Part shown: positions 26,971 through 58,364 of the stretch, piece by piece
Numbering within the stretch: the first letter of the stretch is position 1
Layout: the number at the start of each line of letters is the position of its first letter
DNA from: Histomonas meleagridis 2922-C6/04-290x
Lineage: Eukaryota; Protista; Parabasalia
Length of the DNA: 64,000 bases
Reading direction: 5' to 3'
Assembly (NCBI GenBank): GCA_020184695.1
Contig: JAANOX010000149.1
Location: 62,001 to 126,000, forward strand
Notes under the pieces: generated by a model
The model's database searches: none
What the model saw: the letters and a program-made list of their open reading frames with translations, nothing else
What the model was told of the DNA's origin: nothing
Position numbers and translations under genes: made by a program

Positions 26971-29527
26971 ATGATTGATATTCAAGAATTAAAAAAACTT
27001 CCAAAGGAACAACCTCGAACTATTCGTTTTTATAAGAAAGGAGGTAGTTATTGCGGGATTGAAGAAGACGCAGAAGTTATCGCACAAAAGTATTTAAGGT
27101 CGATTGGTTCACTTAAAGAAACACAAAATAAAAACAGGACATTATATTAGTATTTCAGAAACGTTATATGTTTCATTATTACGAGATCTTTTTACTTTAC
27201 AACCGAACGTCAGTTGAGTTGTACGAGTTTGAAAGTAATGAATGGAATAAAGTCGTTGAAGCGTCACCAGGTGATATTTCGCAAGTTATTGATTTGATGA
27301 ATAGTGATTTAGATCTTTCCACCACTTCACTTTTGTTATCAATTTCTTGTAATTTTCGGAATGAAGAATATTTATTTGATGCATCATGTTGTGATCCTAC
27401 ATTATTTACAATTTCAACCACTGAATTTTATGATAATTCAAGTTTAAACCATTTTGAAAGTTTAATTACACAAACGATGCCGAGTGAAATTTTATTTTAT
27501 TCTATTCCACCTGAAATATTAATTAATATGAAAGTTATTAGTGAAAAGTTTGAAATTCCATATAAAGAAGTTTCAAGTGTTAAAAATGTTGAAATTGATA
27601 AATTTCCGAATAGTAAAAGTATGAAAGCGTTAGTTAATAATTTACATATTAATTTAAATGAATTTGTTCATCAAACGTTTTCATTAGATGAATTTTTAAC
27701 ATTAGATTATTCGTCAACTAATGCGTTAAATATTTTTCCAGAGAATAATTCATATAAAAAGAATAGTTTGCCTACGTCACTTTACCAATTACTTAATGAG
27801 TGTGTTACGCCGATGGGTTCGCGTTTACTTCATCAATATTTACAACAGCCATTATTAAACATCACAGAAATTGAGAAACGACAACGAATTATCGAATATT
27901 TTTAATAATCATCAAGAAGTTAGTCTTAAAATTAGTAATCATATGAAACAACTTCCAGATATTTCACGATTAATTCGTAAATTTGTAAAGAACAAAAGTA
28001 CATTACAAGATTGTGTTCGTTTATATGATATTGTTCTTGTATCTAAAGATTTGAAAATATTTGAAGAAACAACGAATGATAATGAAATGATTGAAAATTT
28101 TGTTAATGAATATAAAAATATTGAAGAAGAACTTAATAAAGTTCAACGACTTATTGAAGAAACGATTGATTTTGATAAGATTCCACAACATATTTATCGG
28201 ATTAAACCTAATTTTGATGAAACGTTAGGTAACACGTCACAATTAATGGAAGATAAACAAAATGAAATGGAAGAACTTCGACGAAATGTATCCGATGAAA
28301 TTAATATTGAAGAAGATAAAGTTAAACTTGAACGAAGTAATAATATGAAAACATTTTTATTTTCGAATTTCACGTAATTTAGAACGAAACATTCGTAATC
28401 ATGAAGATTTTGAGATTTTAGAAACGCGGAAAGATGGTGTTCGTTTTACGTCATATCAACTTAAGCGAATTATTGAAGAATATTTTGAATATGAGAATGA
28501 ATATGATAACAAACAAAAAGAAATTATTGAAGAATTAATTTGCACATTAAAAGAATTTTCCCCGATATTTCAAATATTAAATGATATCTTTTCGACGATT
28601 GATGTTTTTATATCATTATCGAAAGTATCTATTTCTAATAATTATGTTTGTCCTGAATTTGATAAAACGTCTAATCTTATTTCATTAGAAGAAGCGCGTC
28701 ATCCTCTTATTGAGAAACATTGTTTTAATTTTATTCCTAATACTATTCGAATGGAACGAGGAAATTCATCATTTTTAATTATTAGTGGACCAAACTCAGC
28801 AGGGAAATCTACGTTAATGAAAACAGTTGGAATTTGTATATTTTTATCACATATTGGATCATTTGTTCCATGTCACAAAGCCATCATCCCTATTATTACA
28901 TCTATTCATGCGCGTGTTGGAGCATGGGATTCGGTTCATATGTCTACATTTGCAGTTGAGATGACAGAAATGTCATCTATTTTACAGAATGCTAAGCCTA
29001 CGTCATTAATTCTTGTTGATGAACTTGGGCGTAGCACGAGCAGCAGCGATGGTTTTGGCCTTGCGTGGTCTATTTCTAAACGAATAGCGCGAGACATCGG
29101 ATCATTTACATTATTTGCGACACATTTTCATGAATTATGTAATTTATCGAATGAACTTCCGAATGTATTTAATTGTCATATGGATGCGACTAATAACAAT
29201 GGTATTGTAATGTTATACCAATTACGCCCAGGCCCATTCTCTAAGTCATTTGGTATCGAAGCAGCAGAACATGCAGGATTTCCAGCTTCAGTTATCAAAC
29301 GAGCGAAAGAAAAAGCGATTGAATTAGAAATCGCAGATAATGAAACAGGAGAAGTCCCAACGAAAATTGTTATTGATCAAAATGAACCTTATGTGAAATT
29401 CCTTACGAAAGTTATCGAAATGGATTATGAACATATGGCGATGAATGACGTTATCAATACGATTGAAAAAGCACTTGAAATCTTTGAAGAAGATAAAGAA
29501 AACTCACTTGTCGGTGTTAATAAATAA
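26971..29527 (+). pseudogene. MSH2: MSH2, copy B (frameshifts at different sites from copy A)
   Basis: Same motifs as copy A. Shifts near 27130, 27190, 27900 and 28350 lie in A/T runs. Confidence 0.85.
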
Positions 29528-30442
29528 AGAAAATATGTTTTAAGTAATGATTTTTTGACCACAATACTAAGTATCACCAAATGGTTGTATATATCAAATG
29601 AATTAAGAAATAATTTGGTACAAAAAGAAAAAATAATTTTTCAAAAAACATATTTGCCAATAAAACGCATGTTGTAATTTTTATTTTTTCAGAGAACTAA
29701 TTTTTGAAAGAAGAATTTGTCAAGCAAATTGATAAAATTAATAAAATATTTTTTTTTGTTTGATTTATTCAAGATAATTTTTTATTAAAAAATCTTTTGA
29801 CAGAATATGGTTTAGAAGAAATAAATGCCATTTAATTTTGACCATATGCTATTCTTTATGGAAATTGTTTAAGCAAACACTCAAAAATATTTGAATAGAT
29901 GTGATATAAAATAATTTTAATTTGATAACATCAATATTAACAACACGCCGGGAAAAAATTAAATATAAGTTCTGTGGATTCTTCCTATTATAGCTTGAGC
30001 CAATTCTATTTTGTTTTGTGAGATACATTCACGTGCAATGTCATTGACATTGTTCAGCTGCCAAATAGAGGACATATGCTATTAATGATATCATTAGGTG
30101 TAACTGCTGCTTAACTACTGTACTTGACGAATTAATAACGGAACTGAATGTGACTTAACTTCAATTTGAACATTTCATTTTCATTCATCTCAAATCATTC
30201 GATAAAATTTCAATGATTTTCAAATATTTTTTATCATCACAGTATTCAGCATATTAAAGAAATCAAATAAATGAAAGTTATTACTTTAAATTTTCATTTT
30301 ATTTTATTAAGCACCTTCCGATTGATGGAAGGTGAAGTCATTTAGAAAATGACAGAATAAACCAAGCACAGTAAGTGAAAATTGACTCTGACCAAAATGC
30401 AGAGGCAATTCAGTAGTTTATCACCGTTATAAAGGCCATTAA

Positions 30443-33350
30443 ATGGGAAGAAATAATAATGCATTAAACAGAACATTTCTCACAAAATTACAATCACTCA
30501 ATCAAATTATTCGTAACTTAAATGAAAAAAATATTCCTGAGTCTGTACAATCAATAATTGGTTTATTCAATCGGTGTTCATATTCCCTTAGTTTTGTTAT
30601 TAGTCAACTAATTTATATGTCTTTTCTATCCCAAAAGAAGAATTTTGATATTTATTTATGCTTTCTTAAAGAAATACAATCCAATGAGCAAGAAAATCAA
30701 AGAAAAATAATTTATACTTTTGCAAAGTTTCTTAATAATCTTAAAACATTTGAATCAAATTATCTTCTTTTTGAAATGATTGAACAAAAAATAATTGAAT
30801 CTAAAATTATTTCAAATAAAAAATCTCTATATTTTGTAAATTATAATACAGAAGAAACAAAAAATATGGAATATGATATGGATGATTTTGATGACAAATA
30901 TATAAAAATATTTTGGGAATATTTTAATAGTAATTTAGAAATATTAAAAAAGAATGATTGGGAAGTTCATAAAAAATTAATTAAAGAAGGACATAATCCA
31001 AATGAAATTGCTCAAATAATTCGAAATGATGAAATCGAAAAACTTCAAGAAATATCATCACAGACAAATTTTGATTTTAATCAAACAATTGAACCATCGC
31101 TTTATGAAAGATGTTCATTTATTAATAAAGAAAATGTTACATTAATTGATTATGCAGCATTTTTTTCATCAGTTAAATGTTTTAAATATTTACTTATGAA
31201 TGGTGCTAATATAGAAAATGCAGGTAAATACGCTGTTGCAGGTGGAAATGAAGAAATCACTCATTTGTGTGAACAAAATCATTCATCATTTGAAGGTTCA
31301 TATGAAGCTGCAATTGAATATCATCGAAATAATCTTTTCCATTATCTTTATGAAAATGAAATTATTGAAATCAATAGTTTAGATGAATTAGGAAAAGTAT
31401 GTGTTTCATATCATAACTATGAAATTTTATCATTTTTATTAGAAAATGGAATGGAAATAAATGATGCAATTATATACGAATCTGCAAAAATTGGAAATAT
31501 ATTTCTACTAAAATATTTACTTATAGGAAAAAACCCTCCAAAATTTTTATTACATTATGCAATTGAATCTGGAAACTCTGATCTTGTTAATTTCGTTTAT
31601 TTAAAAACTAATATAAATGGGAAAGGTGTTAATTTATTTTGTATCCTGTTTATTTTTATGTATTAATATTTTAAAATCATGTTTTCAGTTTATATAAATA
31701 ATATAGTATGCCTCTTATATATGCAATTGAAAAAGGTGATATTGAAATTGTTAAAATACTTCTTAAACATAAGAATATAAATATTAATTGTGAAGATATT
31801 TTTTTATAATTTTCGATATTTATTTAAGTTATTTTGGATTAAAATATAATATTTGGTGAGTATTTATATTTCTTTTTACACCACTCATTAGTGCAATTAA
31901 AAAGGAAAATGTAGAAATTGTTAAATTGATTCTTGAACGAAAAGGTATAGATGTTAATTTTAAAAATAAAAATTATATAAATTATTTAAAATTCTAAAAT
32001 ATTATTTGGAAATTCTTCATTATATATGATTCAGCACTTTTGATTGCATCTGAAATAGGTAATAAAGAAATAGTAAAATTACTTCTCGAAAAAAAGGAAC
32101 TCGATATAAATATAAGAAATTATATTTATTTCTTGAATAATTAATTTCAAAATAATATTTGGAAATTATTTAAATTATTTGATACAGCACTTATGAAAGC
32201 ATCTTATGAAGGTCATGCAGAAATAGTTAAAATACTTCTTGAACAAGAAGGAATTGATATTTTTGCTCGAAGCATTTAATTTACGTATTTAATGTTTGTT
32301 TTTGATATTATCGGTTTCATAATAATATTTGGAAATTGTTTATATTGTTTAGTACAGCGCTTATATTTTCCGCTCATAATGGTAATATTGAAACAGTTAA
32401 AATACTTCTAGCACAAAAAGGAGCTGATATAAATGATAAAGATATTTATTCATTAAATAATATGTTTATTTTAAAAATTTGGTATTTATCAATAAAAAAT
32501 GGAGTTTGTTTAAATGATTTTGGTCAGTATTTTTTAGTGCGGTTTTCAATGGAGATGTAGAAATCATCAAATTTCTTCTTGGATATAAAGAAATTGATAT
32601 TAATTCTCCTGATATTTATTAATTTTATTTGAATTTGAATTTTGTGATTTTATATTTCAAAATAATATTTGAAAATAATTTAAATTATTTAAAACACCAC
32701 TTATGGTTGCAACTGAAAATGGTCGAACAAAAGTAGTAAAATTACTTCTTGAACAAGAAGGAATTGATGTAAATGCTGGTGTATTTTAACAATATTTGAT
32801 ATTTATTTGATTAATTTAATGTTTCAAATTTGTACAAAATAATTATTTGAATTATTTTGGACAGCACTTATGTGCGCATCTTCAAATGGATATGCAAAAA
32901 TCGTTAAATATCTTCTTGAATTTAAAGGAATTAATATAAATGCTAAATCTATTTATATATTTTTTATGAAGTTTGTTTTAGTGATTTAATGTTTCAAAAT
33001 AATTATTGGGAATTATTCATGTTATTTTATACAGCTTTTATGTTTGCTGCTTATTATGGGAAAACAGAAGTTGTTAAAGTTTTTCTTGAACACAAAGGAT
33101 TTGATATTAATGAGAGAGGAATTTGTTAGTTTTATTTAAAATTAATTTTATTGATTCGATATTTCATAATTAAATTTGGATTTTATTTGAATAAAATAAA
33201 ACAGCACTTATATTAGCAGCTGAAAATGGAAATAAAGAAATTATTTATTTACTTCTAGGACAAGAAGGAATTGATACGAATATGGATATTCCTGAAACAT
33301 TTCAAGAAGACAATGAAAAAGAAGAAGATAATGAATATTATTATTATTAA
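30443..33350 (+). CDS. DUF3447/ankyrin protein: continuous N-terminal ORF (to 31666) followed by 10 single-ankyrin cassettes split by non-GT-AG spacers
   Basis: DUF3447-type core (PSLYER..TLIDYAAFFSSVKCFKYLL..YAVAGGN..AAIEYHRN). Cassettes start at 31708, 31878, 32031, 32184, 32354, 32524, 32694, 32861, 33031 and 33201; the last runs into a unique acidic tail ending TAA 33350. Expression of the full span is inferred. Confidence 0.7.
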
Positions 33351-34797
33351 TAAATGAAATTAAAAAGAATTGAATTTAACCATATGGAAAATTGAGTTTA
33401 TTATTATTTTTTTTTTAATACTGATAATTATAATAAAGATTGCACACAATGATATCAATATTTTTTGATATTTCATTATTTTGTTTAAAAACAGTGACCC
33501 GCTATAAGTTATATGAGTAACATTGTTTACACAAATATCAGATTAGATTTCGTGGGAGTCACTCTCTATGGTTATTCCAAAAGGTGTGTTGGATACAATT
33601 TTTTGTAAAACATTTTGAAGACCAGAAAAGTTTGTATACAAAGGCTTGACGGTTTTTAGCTCATGTTTTGTGCCAAAAAGATGTGATACTCTGTTTATAA
33701 CTATTATTCATTATCAGATGTATGAAAATAGTGATTACTCATGGGCACATATAATTTATATTGATACATAACACATGCATTATTGGGAAAATGCACTTAA
33801 AATACCTTCCTATAGGACGTGCTCGGATAAATAAACGGTCAAAAACTGCACGTTAAAATAATGAAAATTCATTTTTTTCCATGCCTTTTCAAGAATTGAA
33901 ATAAAATGATACATTACATAAATCTATATTTTAAGTGTGTTTGTTTAAGGTAAGTTTTAGATGGTAATATTCAATGTTGAAAATCCGAGTCTACTTTCTC
34001 TGAATTTTTTTTTTTAAATTGATTAATCTTATCTAAATTTTATGCAAATATCTCAATACCTATGAACTGAACTCAAAATAGACATTGCAACTTATATACC
34101 AAAATAAAATCAAAATCATAATAAGCTGAAGAATGCTTATAATTTCCTGAACTGAACATTGAATTAACCAATAACCGTCACAAATCAGACAACCTAGTGG
34201 ACCGTTAAAAATATAATTGTAGTGTTTTTATTTCAATACTTTATGTGGATACGATTAAAATATACTGATTTTTTCTAAAATAAAACAGAAATACCTATAT
34301 CGAAAATTAATTTATAAACTAATATATGCTATTAAAGAATATAACTATTTATGTATATTATAATTTACTAAAATAATTAGAAATTATAAGAAAAATCGAT
34401 CCGAGCATGTCCTTTCCGATAATTTGCAAATTGTTCATACCTTTCAATTTTAAAAAGTGCCATACGTTCACAATTGTTTCAGTTTACTTATCTTTTTGTT
34501 TCTTTATTTTGCTTTAAATCAAAAGAACTATTACAATAATTTTTCAATGCGTTCACATCCGAAAAATGTTTACATAAAATTTTATATAATATTCTGTTGG
34601 AAAATGCTGTAAACTCGTTGCCACCAGCATATGGTCGTAAACCAACACAAAAATTTACGACACCATAAAAAATTGAACCATTGTATGGTCGTAAAACAAC
34701 TTTTTGAATACATGTGAACTGGCCAGTTCCTTTTTACATCCCAATTGAAATTTCAGAGGGTAAACAAATTGTTAATTCAAAAACTGAGCTTGGTTGT

Positions 34798-36154: not shown

Positions 36155-37380
36155 TTATTTTTTGCTCCTTTTGTTCCTTGGCAAACTTTTTCTGTTTTCA
36201 TCTGCGGTTTTCATCGGCTTTCCCACAATGTTATCGCCTTCGATTGAATACTCCATCGGCTGATGCTTAACGATTTTTGGGGGGAACCAGAAACTTTTCC
36301 AGTTGCCAATAAATCCTTTGGAATAAAAGTTTCGTACTGGCTCCTTGTTTCCTATTTTAGCTCTGTATTCTTTCACAGCTTCATACTTATCAATTTCGAT
36401 TTGTGTAACATTGATAGATATAAAATAGCATACTTGACCGACAAAGAAAGTAAGAACCACAACGATAACGCTTAAAATGACAAAGTTAGCAGCAGTGAAG
36501 AGATCTGTTCGCATAATAACTGCAACGCAGATGAAGAAATTTCGCATTTTTAAATCTGGATCCCAACGAATGCGTGGACTAAGCTTATCTATGCGCCAAG
36601 CCATCTGTTTGTATGAGTGAAATGCAAGATAACTTGCTGCTATTATATCAAAGATTAAAAATAGTAAGAAAAATCGATGTGTACGTTCACCAATTGTAGC
36701 AAGAACCCATGGACAATAATGGTCATACTTCCTGTGTGTTAGTGTTTTAAAAAAATGTGAAAATAATTATCATGAGATAATTAATTTCCATATAAAACAT
36801 ACGCAATACGTTTGTTAGTATATTGGCAATAACGGGAACGAGGAACAACTGGGATTTTGAGTGTTCTGCAGAGTGATGGTTTGTATATAACATTATCATA
36901 AGGATATACTTGAAGATATGACTGAACATTCTCGTTGGTGATTTCTCCTGGATCAAGAAATTGAAGAGCTACAAAAATTACCCATGGCCATGGTAAAACA
37001 AAAAATGAGAAAAATTCTCTTATTTTGTAGGAATTAGGATAAACATATTTTAAGTTAGGAAATGTTTGGGAGAAGTAAGTTATTGAAAAAATCATGTAAA
37101 TAGTGTAAAAAAATATTGCGACAAAATATCTACATTTACCATGTGGGCCCATGCAACTATTATCTATATCTTCATCTTCATTTCTTTTTGCAAGTTTTGG
37201 ACAAATTTTTAACGTCAAACTCCTAAAATAAAAAGGGACTTTGATTGATATAAATCTATAAATCGAACCAATAATTCCATTTCGATGGAACTTGTTATTA
37301 CCGCATATCATAACATAAACAAAAAACATCATTACAGCGAGATAAATCCCACAAATGAATATCAATGTTTCCACATCCAT
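36155..37380 (-). CDS. DHHC-family palmitoyl acyltransferase (DHYC variant), two exons
   Basis: Splicing 36732-36802 joins CRTLKIPVVPRSRYCQYTNKRIA to KYDHYCPWVLATIGERTHRFF. ATG 37380 follows an Inr-like TCACA. Confidence 0.9.
36732..36802 (-). other. Canonical parabasalid spliceosomal intron, 71 nt
   Basis: GTATGT 5' end and ACTAACACACAG 3' end; removal restores the DHHC domain. Confidence 0.95.
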
Positions 37381-51534: not shown

Positions 51535-51619
51535 TTAGAACAATGTCTACAGAAAATGAAGAAATTTCATCAACTAACAAACAATAAAGTTTTGCCTCAT
51601 CAATTCCATTATCTGATTT
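51535..51619 (+). pseudogene. Internally deleted fragment of the start of the 58365 gene
   Basis: 41 bp identical to 58357-58397, then CAATTCCATTATCTGATTT identical to 58597-58615, fused to the end of an ankyrin cassette array. Confidence 0.85.
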
Positions 51620-53040
51620 ATAATAGCAAACATAAGTGCTGTTTTAAATATTTTTAATAATTTCCAAACTTTATTTTGATATTTCAAAAAATTAAAATAA
51701 GTTTTAAAACAAATAAATAAATATTTTTTGCATTAATATCAATTCCTTTTTGTTCAAGAAGTAATTTAACTGTTTCTATGTGACCTCTTTCAGATTCCCG
51801 CATAAGTACTGTATATAATATATTGAATAGTTTCCAAATATTATTTTAAAATATCAAATTATTAAAACAAAAATTAAATAAAACATATAACTATCTTTGA
51901 TATTAATATTAATTTCTTTTTGCATAAAAAGTATTTTAACTATTTCTGTATGACCATTTTGAGATGCATACATAAGTGCTGTATAAAATAATTTTCATAA
52001 TTTTCGAATATTATTTTATAATATTAAAATATTAAAATAAATATTATATAAAACAAATAAATATCTTTAGCATTAATATCAATTCCTTTTTGTTCGAGAA
52101 GTAATTTAACGATTTCTGCATGGCCATTTTCAGACGCATACGTAAGTGCTGTCTTAAAATATTTAAATAATTTCCAAATATTATTTTGAAATAGAAAATT
52201 ATTAAAAAAATTTTTAAATAAAACAAATAAATATTTTTAGCATTAATATAAAATGCACCTGTTTTAAATAATTTAAATAACTTCCGAATATTAGATTAAA
52301 GTATTAAATTATTATAATAAAACCGATATAAAACAAATAAATACCTTTGATATTAACATCAATTCCTATTTGCTTCAGGAGTAATTCAGCAATTTCTGTT
52401 TTACCAAATTCAGACGTATTTATAAGTGCTGTTTCAAATAATTTAAAAAATTTCCAAATATTATATTAAAATCCTGAATTATTAAATCAAATATTGTGCA
52501 AAACAAATAAATACTTTTAGTATTTATATCAATTCCTTCTTGTTCAAGCAATAATTGAACTATTTTTATATTCCTAGCATCAACTGCCCTTAGAAGTGCT
52601 GTAGTGAATATTTTAAATAATTTCCAAATATTATTTAGAATCATAAAATTACTTATATGAACCTTAATTAACATAATTAAATGAATTTTTCATTAATATT
52701 AATTACTTCTTTTTCAAGTCGCATTTTAACTATCTCTGTATTACCTTTTAATGATGTATACATAAGCGCTGTATTAAATATTTCAAATTATCTCCAAATG
52801 ATATTTTAAAATATGATATTATATAAATAAATATTATTCATAATAAATGAATATCTTTAATTTTAATAAGTAATTTAAAGATTTCTGTATAGCCTTTTTC
52901 AGATTCATAAATAAGCGCAAATATAAAACACATAATTATTTAAGTATAACTTTCAATTCCTTCTTGTTTAATAAGTAATTGAACAATATTACTTTGTTCG
53001 TTTTGAAATGCACAAGCATAAGAGCGATATAATTCAATAA
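51620..53040 (-). repeat. Orphan array of ~10 ankyrin cassettes with 170-bp period
   Basis: Thr codons at 52772, 52602, 52432, 52262, 52152, 51982, 51812 and 51642; all 8 preceding spacers are 83 nt. Two degenerate cassettes at 52860-53030. Confidence 0.9.
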
Positions 53041-53064: not shown

Positions 53065-54558
53065 TTAATCAATATTTTGACTCTTCATATAATTCACAAT
53101 TTCTTCATGATGAAATTGTTCTGCCAATTGAAACGGAGTTTGATTATTATTATTTTTTACATTTTTATCCACGTTTGCTTTTTCGATCAAATATTTCACA
53201 ATTTCGAAATTTCCTTTTTTACAAGCCCAATGCAAAGGCGTAAAACCATTTTTATCTTTTACATTTTTCTCAACGTTTTCTTTTTCGATCAAATAAATTA
53301 CAATTTCGAGATGATTTTTTTTAGCTGCCAAATGCAACGAAGTTTCATTTTTCCAATTTTTTGTTTCTTTATTTACATTTTCTTTTTCGATTAAATACTT
53401 CACTAAAGAAAGATAACCAAAATCGGAAGCCCAAGGTAACAAATCTCTTTTATATTCTTTCATTGTATTATGTTCTTCAATTAAGTATTTAATGATTTCG
53501 ATATTATCATTATAACATGCAAAATCAATTGGAGGAAGTCCCATTTTATCTCTTGGCTCTAAAAAGACATTTCTTTCTTCAAGAAGATATTTAACTATAT
53601 CAAGACGGCCAATGTGACAAGCAGAATGTAAAGGCGTAATTTCTTCTTCTTCTTGGTCGAGAAAAGCGCCATTAATTAAATAAAAGAGAAAGGACTCAAA
53701 ATGGAAATATTTAAGACATTGCGCAATTGGAACTGGTTCACAGTGATATTTCCGAATTAACAAATCACTAATGGAATATCGATGATATTGAATACTAGTT
53801 TCAAGACAATCTTCAAAGTTATGCCCTTCTTGAAGAAGAATTTCAAGAATTTCTTGGCTTCCTCCAGCAATTGCATAATGGCATGTTTGAGAAGTTGGTT
53901 TACATCCTTTTTTGAGTAAATATTGAAAACATTGAGAGGAACCAAAGAAACAACAAATGTCAAGTGGGAAAATAAAGCGCTTATGAAATAGCTCCCATGA
54001 TGCAGATGCTTTTGTGAGTGGTTGAATAGGTTTCTGAATATCAAATGTTGGGGTGACGGCGAGATACTGAATAAATCCTTCAACATCATCGTCTTTGAGG
54101 AGCGAAAATAATGTCCCTGTTGGATATAGTGTAACTGATTGAATTCCTTTGGGGGTTGGTTGAGGATCGAATTTAATAATTGATTCTGGAAATGTGGAGA
54201 GAACAATGTTGTAAAGAGTTCCTTTGAAAATTCGTTTCGTATGATAATAGATTTCTTGGACACGTTCTGGATTCGTTGAAAGAATACAAGAAAATAATTT
54301 TGGAACAATATCAAGACGTTTTGGTCGAATGCTGACAAAATAACCAAGCAAGTTGATAGAATAACGCATATAAAAAGGTGAAGACTTATGTTGTTCTAAT
54401 TGTGAAATAAATTTTTCTTCAATCTCTTTAAAAGAATATTTGTCAATTGGACCAAATAATGCTTTTAAAAGATCAATGTCTTTTTCTAATGTTTTGTAGA
54501 GTTTGCAATCACTGCATTTATTAACTTCTGAGAAAAAATGAAGTTTTTGATTTTCCAT
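53065..54558 (-). CDS. DUF3447/ankyrin protein with ~6 uninterrupted ankyrin repeats
   Basis: CCFFGSSQCFQYLL, YAIAGGS, SIQYHR core, then TPLHSAC..., TSLHLAAKKNHLEIV and TPLHWACKKGNFEIV with normal DKNG.T loops. Confidence 0.9.
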   Translation of the reverse strand: MENQKLHFFSEVNKCSDCKLYKTLEKDIDLLKALFGPIDKYSFKEIEEKFISQLEQHKSSPFYMRYSINLLGYFVSIRPKRLDIVPKLFSCILSTNPERVQEIYYHTKRIFKGTLYNIVLSTFPESIIKFDPQPTPKGIQSVTLYPTGTLFSLLKDDDVEGFIQYLAVTPTFDIQKPIQPLTKASASWELFHKRFIFPLDICCFFGSSQCFQYLLKKGCKPTSQTCHYAIAGGSQEILEILLQEGHNFEDCLETSIQYHRYSISDLLIRKYHCEPVPIAQCLKYFHFESFLFYLINGAFLDQEEEEITPLHSACHIGRLDIVKYLLEERNVFLEPRDKMGLPPIDFACYNDNIEIIKYLIEEHNTMKEYKRDLLPWASDFGYLSLVKYLIEKENVNKETKNWKNETSLHLAAKKNHLEIVIYLIEKENVEKNVKDKNGFTPLHWACKKGNFEIVKYLIEKANVDKNVKNNNNQTPFQLAEQFHHEEIVNYMKSQNID

Positions 54559-55222: not shown

Positions 55223-57738
55223 TTATTCAATATAACACTGTCCTTCTGCTGATTTGAAGGATTGAAGTAACTGAAGTATTTCAGTATGGCCTTTTTTAGA
55301 AGCTTTCATAAGTGCTGTTTCAAATAATTTAAATAATTTCCATATATTATTTTAAAGTATTAAAATATTAAAATAAAAATTAAACAAAACAAATAAATAT
55401 CTTTGGTATTAATATTAATTTTTTCTTGTACAAGAAGCCATTTAACTATTTTTGTATAACCTTTTTCAGCTGTAAACATAAGCGCTGTTTTAAATATTGT
55501 TAATATTTACCAAATGTCATTTTGAAATATCAAATTATTAAAATAAAAACTAAATAAAACAAATAAATATCTTTAGCATTGATATCAATTCCTTTTTGTT
55601 CAAGAAGTAATTTAACTGTTTCTGTATTACCATATTGAGATACAGTAATAAATGCAGTTCTAAATAATTTGAATAATCTCCAATTATTATTTTGAAATAG
55701 CAAATTATTAAAACAAAAACTATCTTTAGCATTAATATCAATATCCTTTTTCTGCAAAAGTAATTTAACTATTTCTCTATCACATTTTCCAGTTGCCATC
55801 ATGAGTGCTGTATCAAATAATTTAAATGATTTCCAAGTGTTATTTTGAAATCCAATATTATAAAAACAAAATCTAAATAAAATAAATTAATATCTTTGGC
55901 ATTGATATCAATTCTTTTTTGTTCTAGAAGTAATTTAACGATTTCTATATAACCTTTTTCAAATGCAAGCATAAGCGCTGTTTTAAATATTTTAAATAAA
56001 TTCCAAATATTATTTTGAATTAGCAAATTATTTAAATAAATTTTCAATAAAGCAAATAAATATTTTTTTCATTAACATCAATTCCTTCATGTTCAAGAAG
56101 TAATTTTACTATTTCTGTTTCACCAAATTCAGATGCATTGATAAGTGCTGTTATAAATAATTTAAATAATTTCCATATATTTTGTTGAAATAAAAAATTA
56201 CCAACACAAATCACAAATAAAATAAAGAAATATTAAATAACACTAATAAATATCTTTAATATTAATATCAATTCCTTTTTGTTTAAGAAGTATTTGAACA
56301 ATTTTTATATTTTTAAATTGAACTGCCCATAGAAGTGCTGTATCAATTAAATCGAATAAATTCCATATATTATTTTGAAATAAAAAATTAATAAAATAAA
56401 TTTTAAATTCAATAAATAAATATCTTTAGCATTAATATCAATCCCTTTCTGTTCAAGTAGTAAGTTAACTTACAAGTTTTATATTATTTCCTGTAGATAC
56501 TTTTATAAGTGCTGTATCAATTAATTCGAATAAATTCCAAATATTCTTTTAAAGTTTTAAAATCTAAAAATAAATTTCAAATAAAATAAATAAATATCTT
56601 TAGCATTAACATCAATTCTTTCTTGTTTAATAAGTAATTTAACTATTTCTTTATTTCCATTCGTTATAAAATTTGGTAAAAAATAATTTGGAATTTGATG
56701 AGTTTCTTCGAAGATTTTCAGAATAAACGCATTTCCTTTTTGTATAGACATTTCTACCAAATGCTCATCAATTTCCAGCCCTTTTTCTTCTAAAAATGAA
56801 AATACTATATAATTATCATATTTGATACACATCATTCCTAATTTTACTAAATCCTTTATACCATAATTTTTATTATAAAGATAACGAAAAACATGATTTT
56901 GATGATATTCGATTGCTGCTTCATATGCATCTTTAAATGATGAATGATTTTGCTCACATAAATGAATAATTTCTTCATTTCCTCCTGCAACTGCATATTT
57001 ACCTGTGTTTTCTACTTTTGCTCCATTCATAAGTAAATATTTAAAACATTTAATAGAAGAAAAAAATGCTGCATAATCAATTAATGTAACATCGTTTTGA
57101 TTAATAAATGAATATCTCTCATAAAGTGATGGTGCGATTGTTTGATTATAATTAAAATTTGTTTGTGATGATATTTCTTGAAGTTTTTCTATTTCATCAT
57201 TTCGAATGATTTTCGATATTTCATTTGGATTAACTCCTTCTTTAATTAATTTCTTGTGAAGTTTCCAATCATTCTTTTTGAGTTCTTCATAATTTTGAGA
57301 AAAAGTATTCCAAAATCGATCATTGTATAAATATTTATTGTCTTTTTGGTAATGTGCAAAATAATTCGTTTTAATATATATTACAGTATTTGATTTGACT
57401 AAATTTCGTTCAACCATTTTTTCAAGAATAAAATGCGATTCTTCTGAATTTAATTCAGAGTTGTTATCAATAAATAGATCAAGTATTGATGGTGTTATTT
57501 TGTTTTTCCCATCAACTTGTAGTAAATAATCGATCATTAAAGTAACTTCTAAATGTCGTGATAAAAAAGCTGAATATAAATATCTTGCAATCATAAAATG
57601 AATTGATTTAGGGAAACAGGTAGAAGATAAAATTTGGAATGTTGATTGAACAGAATTTTCAAGGTTTTCTTGATCAATACTAAATATAATTCTTTCAATA
57701 TCTAAAAGAGCTTGGTATTTTATTTCAGCAGGTTCCAT
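55223..57738 (-). CDS. DUF3447/ankyrin protein: continuous ORF (57738-56557) followed by 8 single-ankyrin cassettes split by non-GT-AG spacers
   Basis: Cassette Thr codons at 56515, 56341, 56151, 55981, 55811, 55658, 55488 and 55318; the last forms a C-cap ending TAA 55223. Cassette 1 carries a 4-nt frameshift. Expression of the full span is inferred. Confidence 0.65.
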
Positions 57739-58364
57739 AAAAACTGATGGAGGTTTTTCTCTTTTTGAAGGAGTTTAACCATTTATTTTGAGTGTATTTG
57801 AATACTCCTCACACAAATTAATTCAATTTTCTCCATTTTTTTAAAGAACGAAGCGTTAATTCGTAGTGGAAAAAATCTTGGGGTTTTTCTATGTCAGACA
57901 GACCTAGTGAAAAAAATCATGTGGGGTGCAAATTCTTCTCCGATTTTATCTACGCAGGAGGAGCCGCCTTCCATGTGCGAAAAAAATATGTTGGTTCTGC
58001 AGAAAGGACTTTAGTCTTTTTGCAGAACCAACTAAATTGCACCTAAGGTACTCACAATCATCGGATTTTGCACCGCCCCAAAACGCTAAAGACATTGTTC
58101 GTTTGTAAAGATTACACAGAAGATCTTCTGAGAAACCAAAAATAAACAGTAGCAACGATTAGAATATATGTCTTATGTCATTTAAACTAAAAAAAATAAT
58201 AAGAAAGAGAAAACAATCATTCTGACGCAAAGATCCTCATTTGTAAATTTTTTGAGAGTGAAAAAGTGACAGTTCTTGTTTATTGAAGCTTTCAAAATGA
58301 ACCGACACACAAACCGAGGTGCCCTGAAATACCAAACAAAGCTTGTCAAATTTACATTAGAACA

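Follow-up and report, generated by a model that had tools for sequence, protein, structure and literature searches.

Organization of the locus

The DNA under study (the window) is a 64,000-nucleotide (nt) stretch of contig JAANOX010000149.1 of Histomonas meleagridis, AT-rich and eukaryotic, and our subject is a plus-strand ankyrin gene within it, here called gene A, whose repeats are separated by spacers built from pieces of exactly 17 nt. The gene opens with an open reading frame (ORF) at 30443..31666, which starts from the ATG at 30443. Both the DUF3447 (Pfam PF11929) and the ANK models match this head, which belongs to the parabasalid DUF3447/ankyrin repeat proteins; 2982 representative relatives were retrieved, and the homologues include H. 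meleagridis proteins, the nearest named relatives of the head. Ten stop-free ankyrin cassettes lie 3′ of the head ORF, the real stop codon stands at 33351-33353, and the spacers contain stops in all frames.

A sequence-only reading of this DNA had already described the stop at 31666 with ten stop-free ankyrin blocks behind it, a distance of 87 nt from the Thr-position to the Asp-position codon, and Asp-to-Thr spacers of 83, 83, 66, 66, 83, 83, 83, 80, 83 and 83 nt. All of these values were recovered. The 87 nt are found in the 93-nt cassettes, 83 is 3 + 77 + 3 and 66 is 6 + 57 + 3, and the one value of 80 arises where an ordinary 77-nt spacer follows a cassette lacking one codon (32691-32780, 90 nt).

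When 38 pieces of 17 nt are taken out, a single open frame of 753 amino acids (aa) results, with regular 34-residue ankyrin repeats, D-x-x-G-x-T loops and an acidic tail. Gene A is thus very probably one expressed gene for a 753-aa DUF3447/ankyrin protein, from which 38 U-rich 17-nt pieces, hereafter mini-introns, are removed at the RNA level. Its parts would be the head, ten cassette exons and 28 single-codon micro-exons (the exon total is given as 49), and the inter-repeat loop D-x-x-G-x-T would be encoded codon by codon, with a 17-nt mini-intron between codons. As 17 is not a multiple of 3, any single retained mini-intron destroys the frame. Neither the simple 407-aa product of the head ORF, looked for in the protein collection, nor the full-length spliced protein, looked for among public sequences in the relatives search, was found. 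One paralogue, P0014, has no cassette array behind it.

Removal of the 17-nt pieces from RNA

Our RNA evidence consists of Logan assembled contigs from four runs of the same organism, placed on 30200-33700; the kind of run was guessed ('RNA?'). Within this interval the contig depth is zero outside 30442..33485, which points to a transcript and not to DNA carry-over. The transcript extends to about 33485, and depth is about zero after 33592. About half of the 31-mers of gene A are present in the four runs. Cassette pieces of 93-96 nt match the genome with 0 mismatches and are joined in genomic order, contiguous with the head, and all 38 pieces are both 17 nt long and missing from the RNA contigs. 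What the RNA retains between cassettes is either the predicted kept letters (GAAAATGGG, ATAATAA) or the predicted number of them (2, 11, 4, 8, 8), and the model fits eight of the ten junctions.

The word content of the runs gives the same picture. Of the genomic 31-mers in 31640-33200, 37.2% are free of all 17-mers, and complete removal therefore predicts a share of 0.372. Among sampled array 31-mers, 0.36-0.39 are present in the RNA runs versus 0.91 in DNA runs of the same organism. As the RNA share approximates the intron-free fraction while the DNA share is 0.91, the pieces are in the DNA and essentially gone from the RNA. The spacers are removed at the RNA level, and we infer that this removal is post-transcriptional. 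The sequence-only reading had proposed that the spacers are skipped within one expressed gene, with non-canonical splicing among its options. Both proposals agree with RNA contigs that join the cassettes without spacer sequence or 17-mers while the DNA runs keep it.

The individual junctions can be followed along the gene. Exon 1, the head (30443..31627, 395 codons), carries DUF3447 and the first ankyrin repeats, and is supported by the ORF, by Pfam and by RNA contigs that start at 30442. Spacer J1 (31628..31704, 77 nt) is parsed as 17/CCT/17/AAT/17/TCA/17. Its RNA contig shows 2 mismatches and 2 extra letters, exactly as CCT AAT TCA predicts, and this fixes the junction after 31627; the apparent stop at 31664-31666 falls inside a J1 mini-intron. 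Cassette exon 2 (31705..31797, 93 nt) is matched by an RNA piece at 31705-31797 with 0 mismatches in four runs. Across J2 (31798..31874, 77 nt, 17/GAT/17/TGG/17/GGT/17), 11 RNA letters lie between the pieces, that is, 9 kept letters and 2 exon letters. Exon 3 (31875..31970, 96 nt) corresponds to the RNA piece 31877-31972. J3 (31971..32027, 57 nt, 17/AAA/17/GGA/17) leaves 4 RNA letters, which are the 6 kept letters less 2 that also fit the flank.

Exon 4 (32028..32123, 96 nt) is present as an RNA piece with the same ends. The next spacer, J4 (32124..32180, 57 nt, 17/TTA/17/GGA/17), is placed by the model only, and exon 5 (32181..32273, 93 nt) by the 17/3 parse together with a joint 32274>32351 in four runs. 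J5 (32274..32350, 77 nt, 17/AAT/17/TCG/17/GGA/17) corresponds to a joint skipping 76 nt in all four runs. One contig of run X2 (record 7) has 50 letters ahead of the exon start at 32351, of which 8 would lie between the pieces once the joint's shorter side (42) is subtracted. Exon 6 (32351..32443, 93 nt) is again an RNA piece with these ends, and J6 (32444..32520, 77 nt, 17/TAT/17/GGT/17/GGA/17) is spanned by the joint 32443>32521, skipping 77 nt in all four runs.

Exon 7 (32521..32613, 93 nt) is supported by RNA contigs and the 17/3 parse, J7 (32614..32690, 77 nt, 17/GAA/17/TAT/17/GAA/17) by the model only, and exon 8 (32691..32780, 90 nt), the short cassette, by the 17/3 parse. For J8 (32781..32857, 77 nt, 17/GAT/17/AAT/17/AAT/17) the RNA has the letters ATAATAA between 32781 and 32857, the kept codons minus two letters common to the flanks. 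Exon 9 (32858..32950, 93 nt) matches the RNA piece 32857-32950 with 0 mismatches. At J9 (32951..33027, 77 nt, 17/GAA/17/AAT/17/GGG/17) the RNA reads GAAAATGGG between 32950 and 33028, which is the three kept codons themselves. Exon 10 (33028..33120, 93 nt) has the RNA piece 33028-33121, and J10 (33121..33197, 77 nt, 17/AAA/17/GAT/17/GGA/17) leaves 8 RNA letters, the 9 kept letters less 1 shared. The last exon (33198..33353), with the ankyrin cap, the acidic tail and the stop, is covered by the RNA piece 33198-33485.

Simpler parses were considered and rejected. A single intron of 68 or 71 nt per spacer is ruled out, as the RNA keeps 7-11 letters that are contiguous with neither flank. The sequence-only reading had expected 68 or 71 nt to be skipped as one block. 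The total of 68 nt per 83-class spacer is right, but it is made up of four (or three) 17-nt pieces and not of one unit, and the three (or two) inner codons stay in the mRNA, where they encode the ankyrin loop including its Gly. A model with one micro-exon and two larger introns was dropped, as the 17/3 parse fits every junction.

The contigs have two further features. Depth reaches 10^5-10^6 at 31019-31252, 32189-32305 and 32657-32773, versus tens elsewhere in gene A, and an A>T difference is seen at 31168. These stretches are probably k-mers common to highly expressed paralogues, and not gene A's own expression. There are also high-depth joints of 467-774 nt; their sides are short, at 20-30 nt, they include foreign letters, and they probably result from paralogue cross-talk.

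Anatomy of the spacers

Each spacer consists of k pieces of exactly 17 nt and k-1 in-frame codons, which gives a length of 20k-3, that is, 57, 77 or 97 nt. Gene A has eight spacers of 77 nt (4 x 17 + 3 codons) and two of 57 nt (3 x 17 + 2 codons), the 57-nt form having one 20-nt module less than the 77-nt form and the 97-nt form one more. The period of the repeats shifts by exactly 17 (153 versus 170), because the codon is absorbed by the neighboring cassette exon. About 100 such pieces are present in the window, those of two minus-strand arrays included, and the composition, ends and codon counts given below come from its 95 parsed pieces, 70 micro-exon codons and 24 spacers.

The pieces, all 17 nt long, lie between codons (phase 0) and follow the consensus R-U-U-U-(A)...A-U-U-U. 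Position 1 is A or G in 92% of them, TTT occupies positions 2-4 and again 15-17, and A is found at position 14 in 81%. On the sense strand they contain 57% T and 35% A, an asymmetry that points to an RNA-level signal. The commonest ends (n=95) are AT..TT (32), AA..TT (15) and GT..TT (8), and no piece ends in AG. The first exon base after a piece is a purine in 81%, and the cuts fall mostly after U.

The micro-exons are of a different nature. Their codons are purine-rich, with a G content of 33% versus 4.7% in the 17-mers, and none of the 70 is a stop, versus 7.4% of the 3-mers taken from within the 17-mers. In 20 of the 24 spacers the final micro-exon is GGN, the loop glycine, versus a background of 0.07%. 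The spacers of gene A are 62% identical pairwise, versus 45% expected by chance at this composition, and an identity of only 62% argues that they are not tandem copies; their lengths are exact, with no piece that has gained or lost a base. This sequence comparison indicates that the micro-exon codons and the exact piece length are kept under selection.

We found no sign that structure defines the pieces. RNAalifold returned 0 conserved pairs on 20 spacers, a palindrome around GGA was 75% paired versus 76% in shuffles, and only one of 95 single 17-mers folded with a negative minimum free energy (MFE). A 'double palindrome' around TGG/GGA was rejected for lack of covariation, and the mutual information between 17-mer positions was found to reflect descent classes and not pairing. 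No TA or direct-repeat boundaries were found at the pieces, the other large ORFs of the window had no lone 17-nt breaks, and Rfam and tRNA scans of the window gave no matches.

Paralogous arrays and neighboring genes

Two further arrays lie on the minus strand. By its sequence layout, gene B (about 57771..55223) appears to be a paralogous head with 9 cassettes in the 17+3 arrangement, its spacers measuring 77, 77, 97, 77, 77, 57, 77 and 77 nt; the one 97-nt spacer has five pieces. Where 93 nt would be expected, its second cassette exon (56518..56422) has 97, which breaks the frame. Array C (52940..51577) is headless, with about 9 cassettes and eight exact 77-nt spacers that appear to follow the same layout. 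An intron-less ankyrin gene (about 54555..53065, minus) stops directly before it. One cassette of the array is cut to 33 nt (52233-52265) and the tail is degenerate; the array is probably a relic. The same geometry had been noted on the opposite strand, and gene B and array C indeed provide 16 spacers, 14 of them of 77 nt. The earlier figure of 21 in 26 spacers also agrees if all three arrays are counted together (16 + 10 = 26).

A canonical parabasalid intron, GTATGT...ACTAACACACAG, 71 nt long and matching the Trichomonas consensus (PMC12316389), lies at 36802..36732 (minus) in a DHHC-type gene (..YDHYCPWV..). Situated 3.4 kb from the array, it shows that the organism uses canonical signals elsewhere. 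An exact match to ACTAACACACAG occurs in the window only at 36732-36743, in the DHHC gene, and nowhere in the arrays.

A MutS-like gene with a MutS_V domain (27168-29527, plus) lies in three reading frames, with breaks near 27900 and 28350 in T runs. These are 1-nt shifts in T runs and were rejected as mini-introns; homopolymer assembly error, a pseudogene or frameshifting could be responsible. At three further places on the minus strand (1980, 9613 and 22118), one long ORF adjoins another whose frame is shifted by 1 mod 3.

Relatives in metagenomes

Two ENA metagenome contigs (L002 and L003) carry heads about 50% identical and keep the layout of 4x17 + 3 codons, their 17-mers having diverged and being mostly GT..TT; most of the L003 pieces start with GT and end with TT. 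An ENA metagenome protein, P0148, stems from an ORF call in which a 57-nt spacer, being in frame, was simply translated (..INAKN KIYFNDFIFQNNIWGFLKLF KTALMF..), which shows how such genes get mis-called.

JGI metagenome contigs hold more remote heads, 22-41% identical to that of gene A. Their pyruvate phosphate dikinase is 65-66% identical to the enzymes of Tritrichomonas foetus and Trichomonas vaginalis, so that these contigs come from a distinct parabasalid. The period of its ankyrin repeats is either 99 nt or 116 = 99 + 17 nt, and in 102 distinct 116-nt units the stops in the upstream and downstream frames place the insert over the same 17 positions, between loop codons 3/4. The insert is exactly 17 nt, and not 20 or 23, because the intron-less repeats have a 99-nt period. 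Within one array, adjacent repeats that are otherwise similar may have or lack the 17 nt, and this is their only difference. The consensus of the insert is GTTGAGTTTTTATATTT, and it sits where piece 'c' stands in the Histomonas spacers. The comparison of these contigs with gene A indicates that the 17-nt unit recurs in a distant metagenomic parabasalid, one per repeat.

Outside ankyrin loops, 17-mers were no more frequent in about 450 kb of the metagenomic parabasalid than hits of a reversed-matrix decoy, and a search with its head for Trichomonas or Tritrichomonas homologues returned only itself and paralogues. Some repeats (L033:502-740, L034:502-620 and L035:1063-1181) have a period of 118 and a 19-nt insert with an extra TA inside. 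An insert of this length would leave the frame broken, and these repeats are possibly dead.

Discussion

How could pieces of this kind be recognized? Recognition would rely on the exact length together with short U-rich end motifs, which would define the mini-introns with no role for GU-AG, for the parabasalid extended motifs or for RNA structure. As to the machinery, we lean toward a spliceosomal variant, a derived, length-measuring form of splicing at the lower intron size limit that would take out one mini-intron at a time. This mode is favored because the size lies at the known intron floor, the length class is equally narrow and the pieces of the relatives still start with GT; the 5′ end, GT in these relatives, would have been relaxed to AT or AA in the present genome.

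Several points weigh against this reading of gene A. No piece ends in AG, and ends such as AU..UU are hard to fit to the known geometry of the spliceosome, for which a 3-nt exon between two introns is awkward as well. As branch candidates the pieces offer only their conserved A residues (positions 9, 11 and 14), and from any such candidate to the 3′ end there are at most 3-8 nt. The contigs are assembled and are not raw reads, and with the run kind guessed, rare unspliced forms would stay hidden. J4 and J7 are placed by the model only. Lastly, the frame break of gene B and the relic state of array C indicate that part of the family is decaying.

Some of these difficulties would be met by a non-spliceosomal route, in which an endonuclease and an RtcB- or Trl1-type ligase remove the pieces at the RNA level, as in tRNA or HAC1/XBP1 splicing. 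The endonuclease would cut 5′ of purines beside U runs, and some ruler would set the 17-nt distance. We regard this route as somewhat less probable, yet as a serious rival. It accords with the fact that both cuts precede a purine (92% and 81% R, respectively), usually after U, with the awkwardness of 3-nt exons for two spliceosomes, and with the missing GT-AG and extended parabasalid motifs in a genome that has a perfect canonical intron at 36802..36732 (PMC12316389). However, the known enzymes need structure, either a bulge-helix-bulge or paired stem-loops, and the 17-mers have a negative MFE in one case of 95, without consensus structure or covariation in the spacers. Moreover, the relatives start with GT, as decayed spliceosomal 5′ sites would, and a fixed length near 15-17 nt is the known floor of spliceosomal introns (PMC10245619).

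If that route were nevertheless the true one, parabasalids might possess a second, non-spliceosomal splicing system that cuts out U-rich segments of exactly 17 nt by their length, with neighbors 3 nt apart. We put this forward only tentatively, together with two companion suggestions, as doubtful as the system itself: that it would be old and common to Histomonas-like and distant parabasalid lineages, and that it would have escaped notice since gaps below about 21 nt without GT-AG are thrown out by aligners and intron pipelines.

Both routes act on RNA. Far less probable is that the RNA was copied from DNA without the pieces, either from intron-less twin genes or after excision in part of the cells, as with the internal eliminated sequences (IES) of ciliates. 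The share of array words in the DNA runs, 0.91 and not 1.00, leaves some room for it. Yet these words include the spacers, which disfavors the DNA-level excision that the sequence-only reading had listed, and the interrupted copies themselves keep the micro-exon codons, with no stops and a conserved GGN, and the exact piece length. Exons and RNA also agree without a single mismatch, the pieces are not bounded by TA or other repeats, and a germline-soma split is not known from parabasalids.

It is hardly credible that the cassettes lie outside the message, with a protein that ends at the 31666 stop and cassettes that are amplified pseudo-exons or silent donors of the variable lymphocyte receptor (VLR) type, or with ribosomes that bypass the spacers. 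The headless array C, the broken frame of gene B and spacers with stops in all frames would suit such a state of affairs. But the RNA runs from the head into the cassettes in genomic order, contiguously and in place, and its word share equals the intron-free fraction. The 17-mers being already gone from it, nothing is left to bypass, which excludes the ribosomal bypassing considered at first; copying elsewhere is not seen, and the VLR-like donor proposal thus finds no support. We give as little credence to an artefact of reverse-transcriptase template switching or of de Bruijn assembly jumps in AT-rich repeats: the family is repetitive and the many high-depth joints of 467-774 nt, with their 20-30-nt sides and foreign letters, resemble paralogue cross-talk, but the same joints recur in four runs with exact sides of 93-94 nt, each of the 38 deletions has a length of exactly 17 nt, together they bring the sequence into one frame and leave loop codons that make sense, the boundaries show no direct repeats ('both' = 0), and stop codons independently pin the insert in the metagenomic parabasalid (DNA only).

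Removal of the 17-nt pieces from gene A by splicing would challenge current views of the limits of this process, with fixed 17-nt introns that have no GT-AG and runs of single-codon exons flanked by introns. Histomonas would offer a culturable organism for testing the lower size limit of introns and exons and nuclear mRNA splicing without canonical signals. ORF-based gene calling would truncate or miss a large ankyrin family in Histomonas and other parabasalids. The default minimum intron of STAR is 21 nt, and standard RNA-seq settings hide these mini-introns. Trichomonas intron pipelines likewise drop junctions without canonical motifs (PMC12316389), and according to the H. meleagridis genome paper no gene has more than one intron (PMC8529796). 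Our literature search on 17-nt, tiny or non-canonical introns in Histomonas, Dientamoeba, Trichomonas and parabasalids found no description of such a layout.

Comparison with known systems

The micro-exons of animals and plants (3-30 nt) lie between long introns and depend on enhancers. Those of gene A are like them in that exons down to one codon are joined correctly, but up to four 3-nt exons stand in a row, with 17-nt introns between them. The nonconventional introns of euglenids and the non-canonical introns of Fritillaria and Oikopleura are removed precisely from nuclear pre-mRNA and have no GT-AG borders. The former vary in length and need their ends to pair, whereas the 17-mers have a fixed length and lack conserved pairing; the tunicate introns are of ordinary size, in contrast to 17 nt here. 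The splice-site pairing that is conserved in structure-defined introns, be they of the bulge-helix-bulge, IRE1 or euglenid nonconventional type, is not found in the 17-mers.

The ultra-short introns of mikrocytids and heterotrichs have GT-AG ends. They are spliceosomal and measure 16-17 nt in the former and 15-16 nt in Stentor (PMC10245619). The pieces of gene A resemble them in forming a narrow class at 15-17 nt, in being missing from mRNA and in having sequences conserved within a genome, as in GTTGAGTTTTTATATTT. The mikrocytid and Stentor introns are, however, ordinary spliceosomal introns in many gene classes, whereas the 17-mers have no GT-AG, come in strings of 3-5 placed 3 nt apart and, within the approximately 0.5 Mb examined, occur only in ankyrin repeat loops.

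Within the phylum, Trichomonas introns are of type A (56-196 nt) or type B (23-28 nt), with GT-AG ends, a 5′ GTWYWD and a 3′ end fused with the branch site (ACTAACACACAG / RCTAACACAYAG or TCTAAC..AACAG) (PMC12316389). None of these features, whether GT...AG, GTWYWD with the fused branch site, or the length and number per gene, is found in the 17-mers. Type B introns are likewise short and U-rich in the middle, and the window has its own type A-like intron at 36802..36732. But the Trichomonas introns of both types measure at least 23 nt and number at most one to two per gene, whereas here all are 17 nt and gene A alone has 38.

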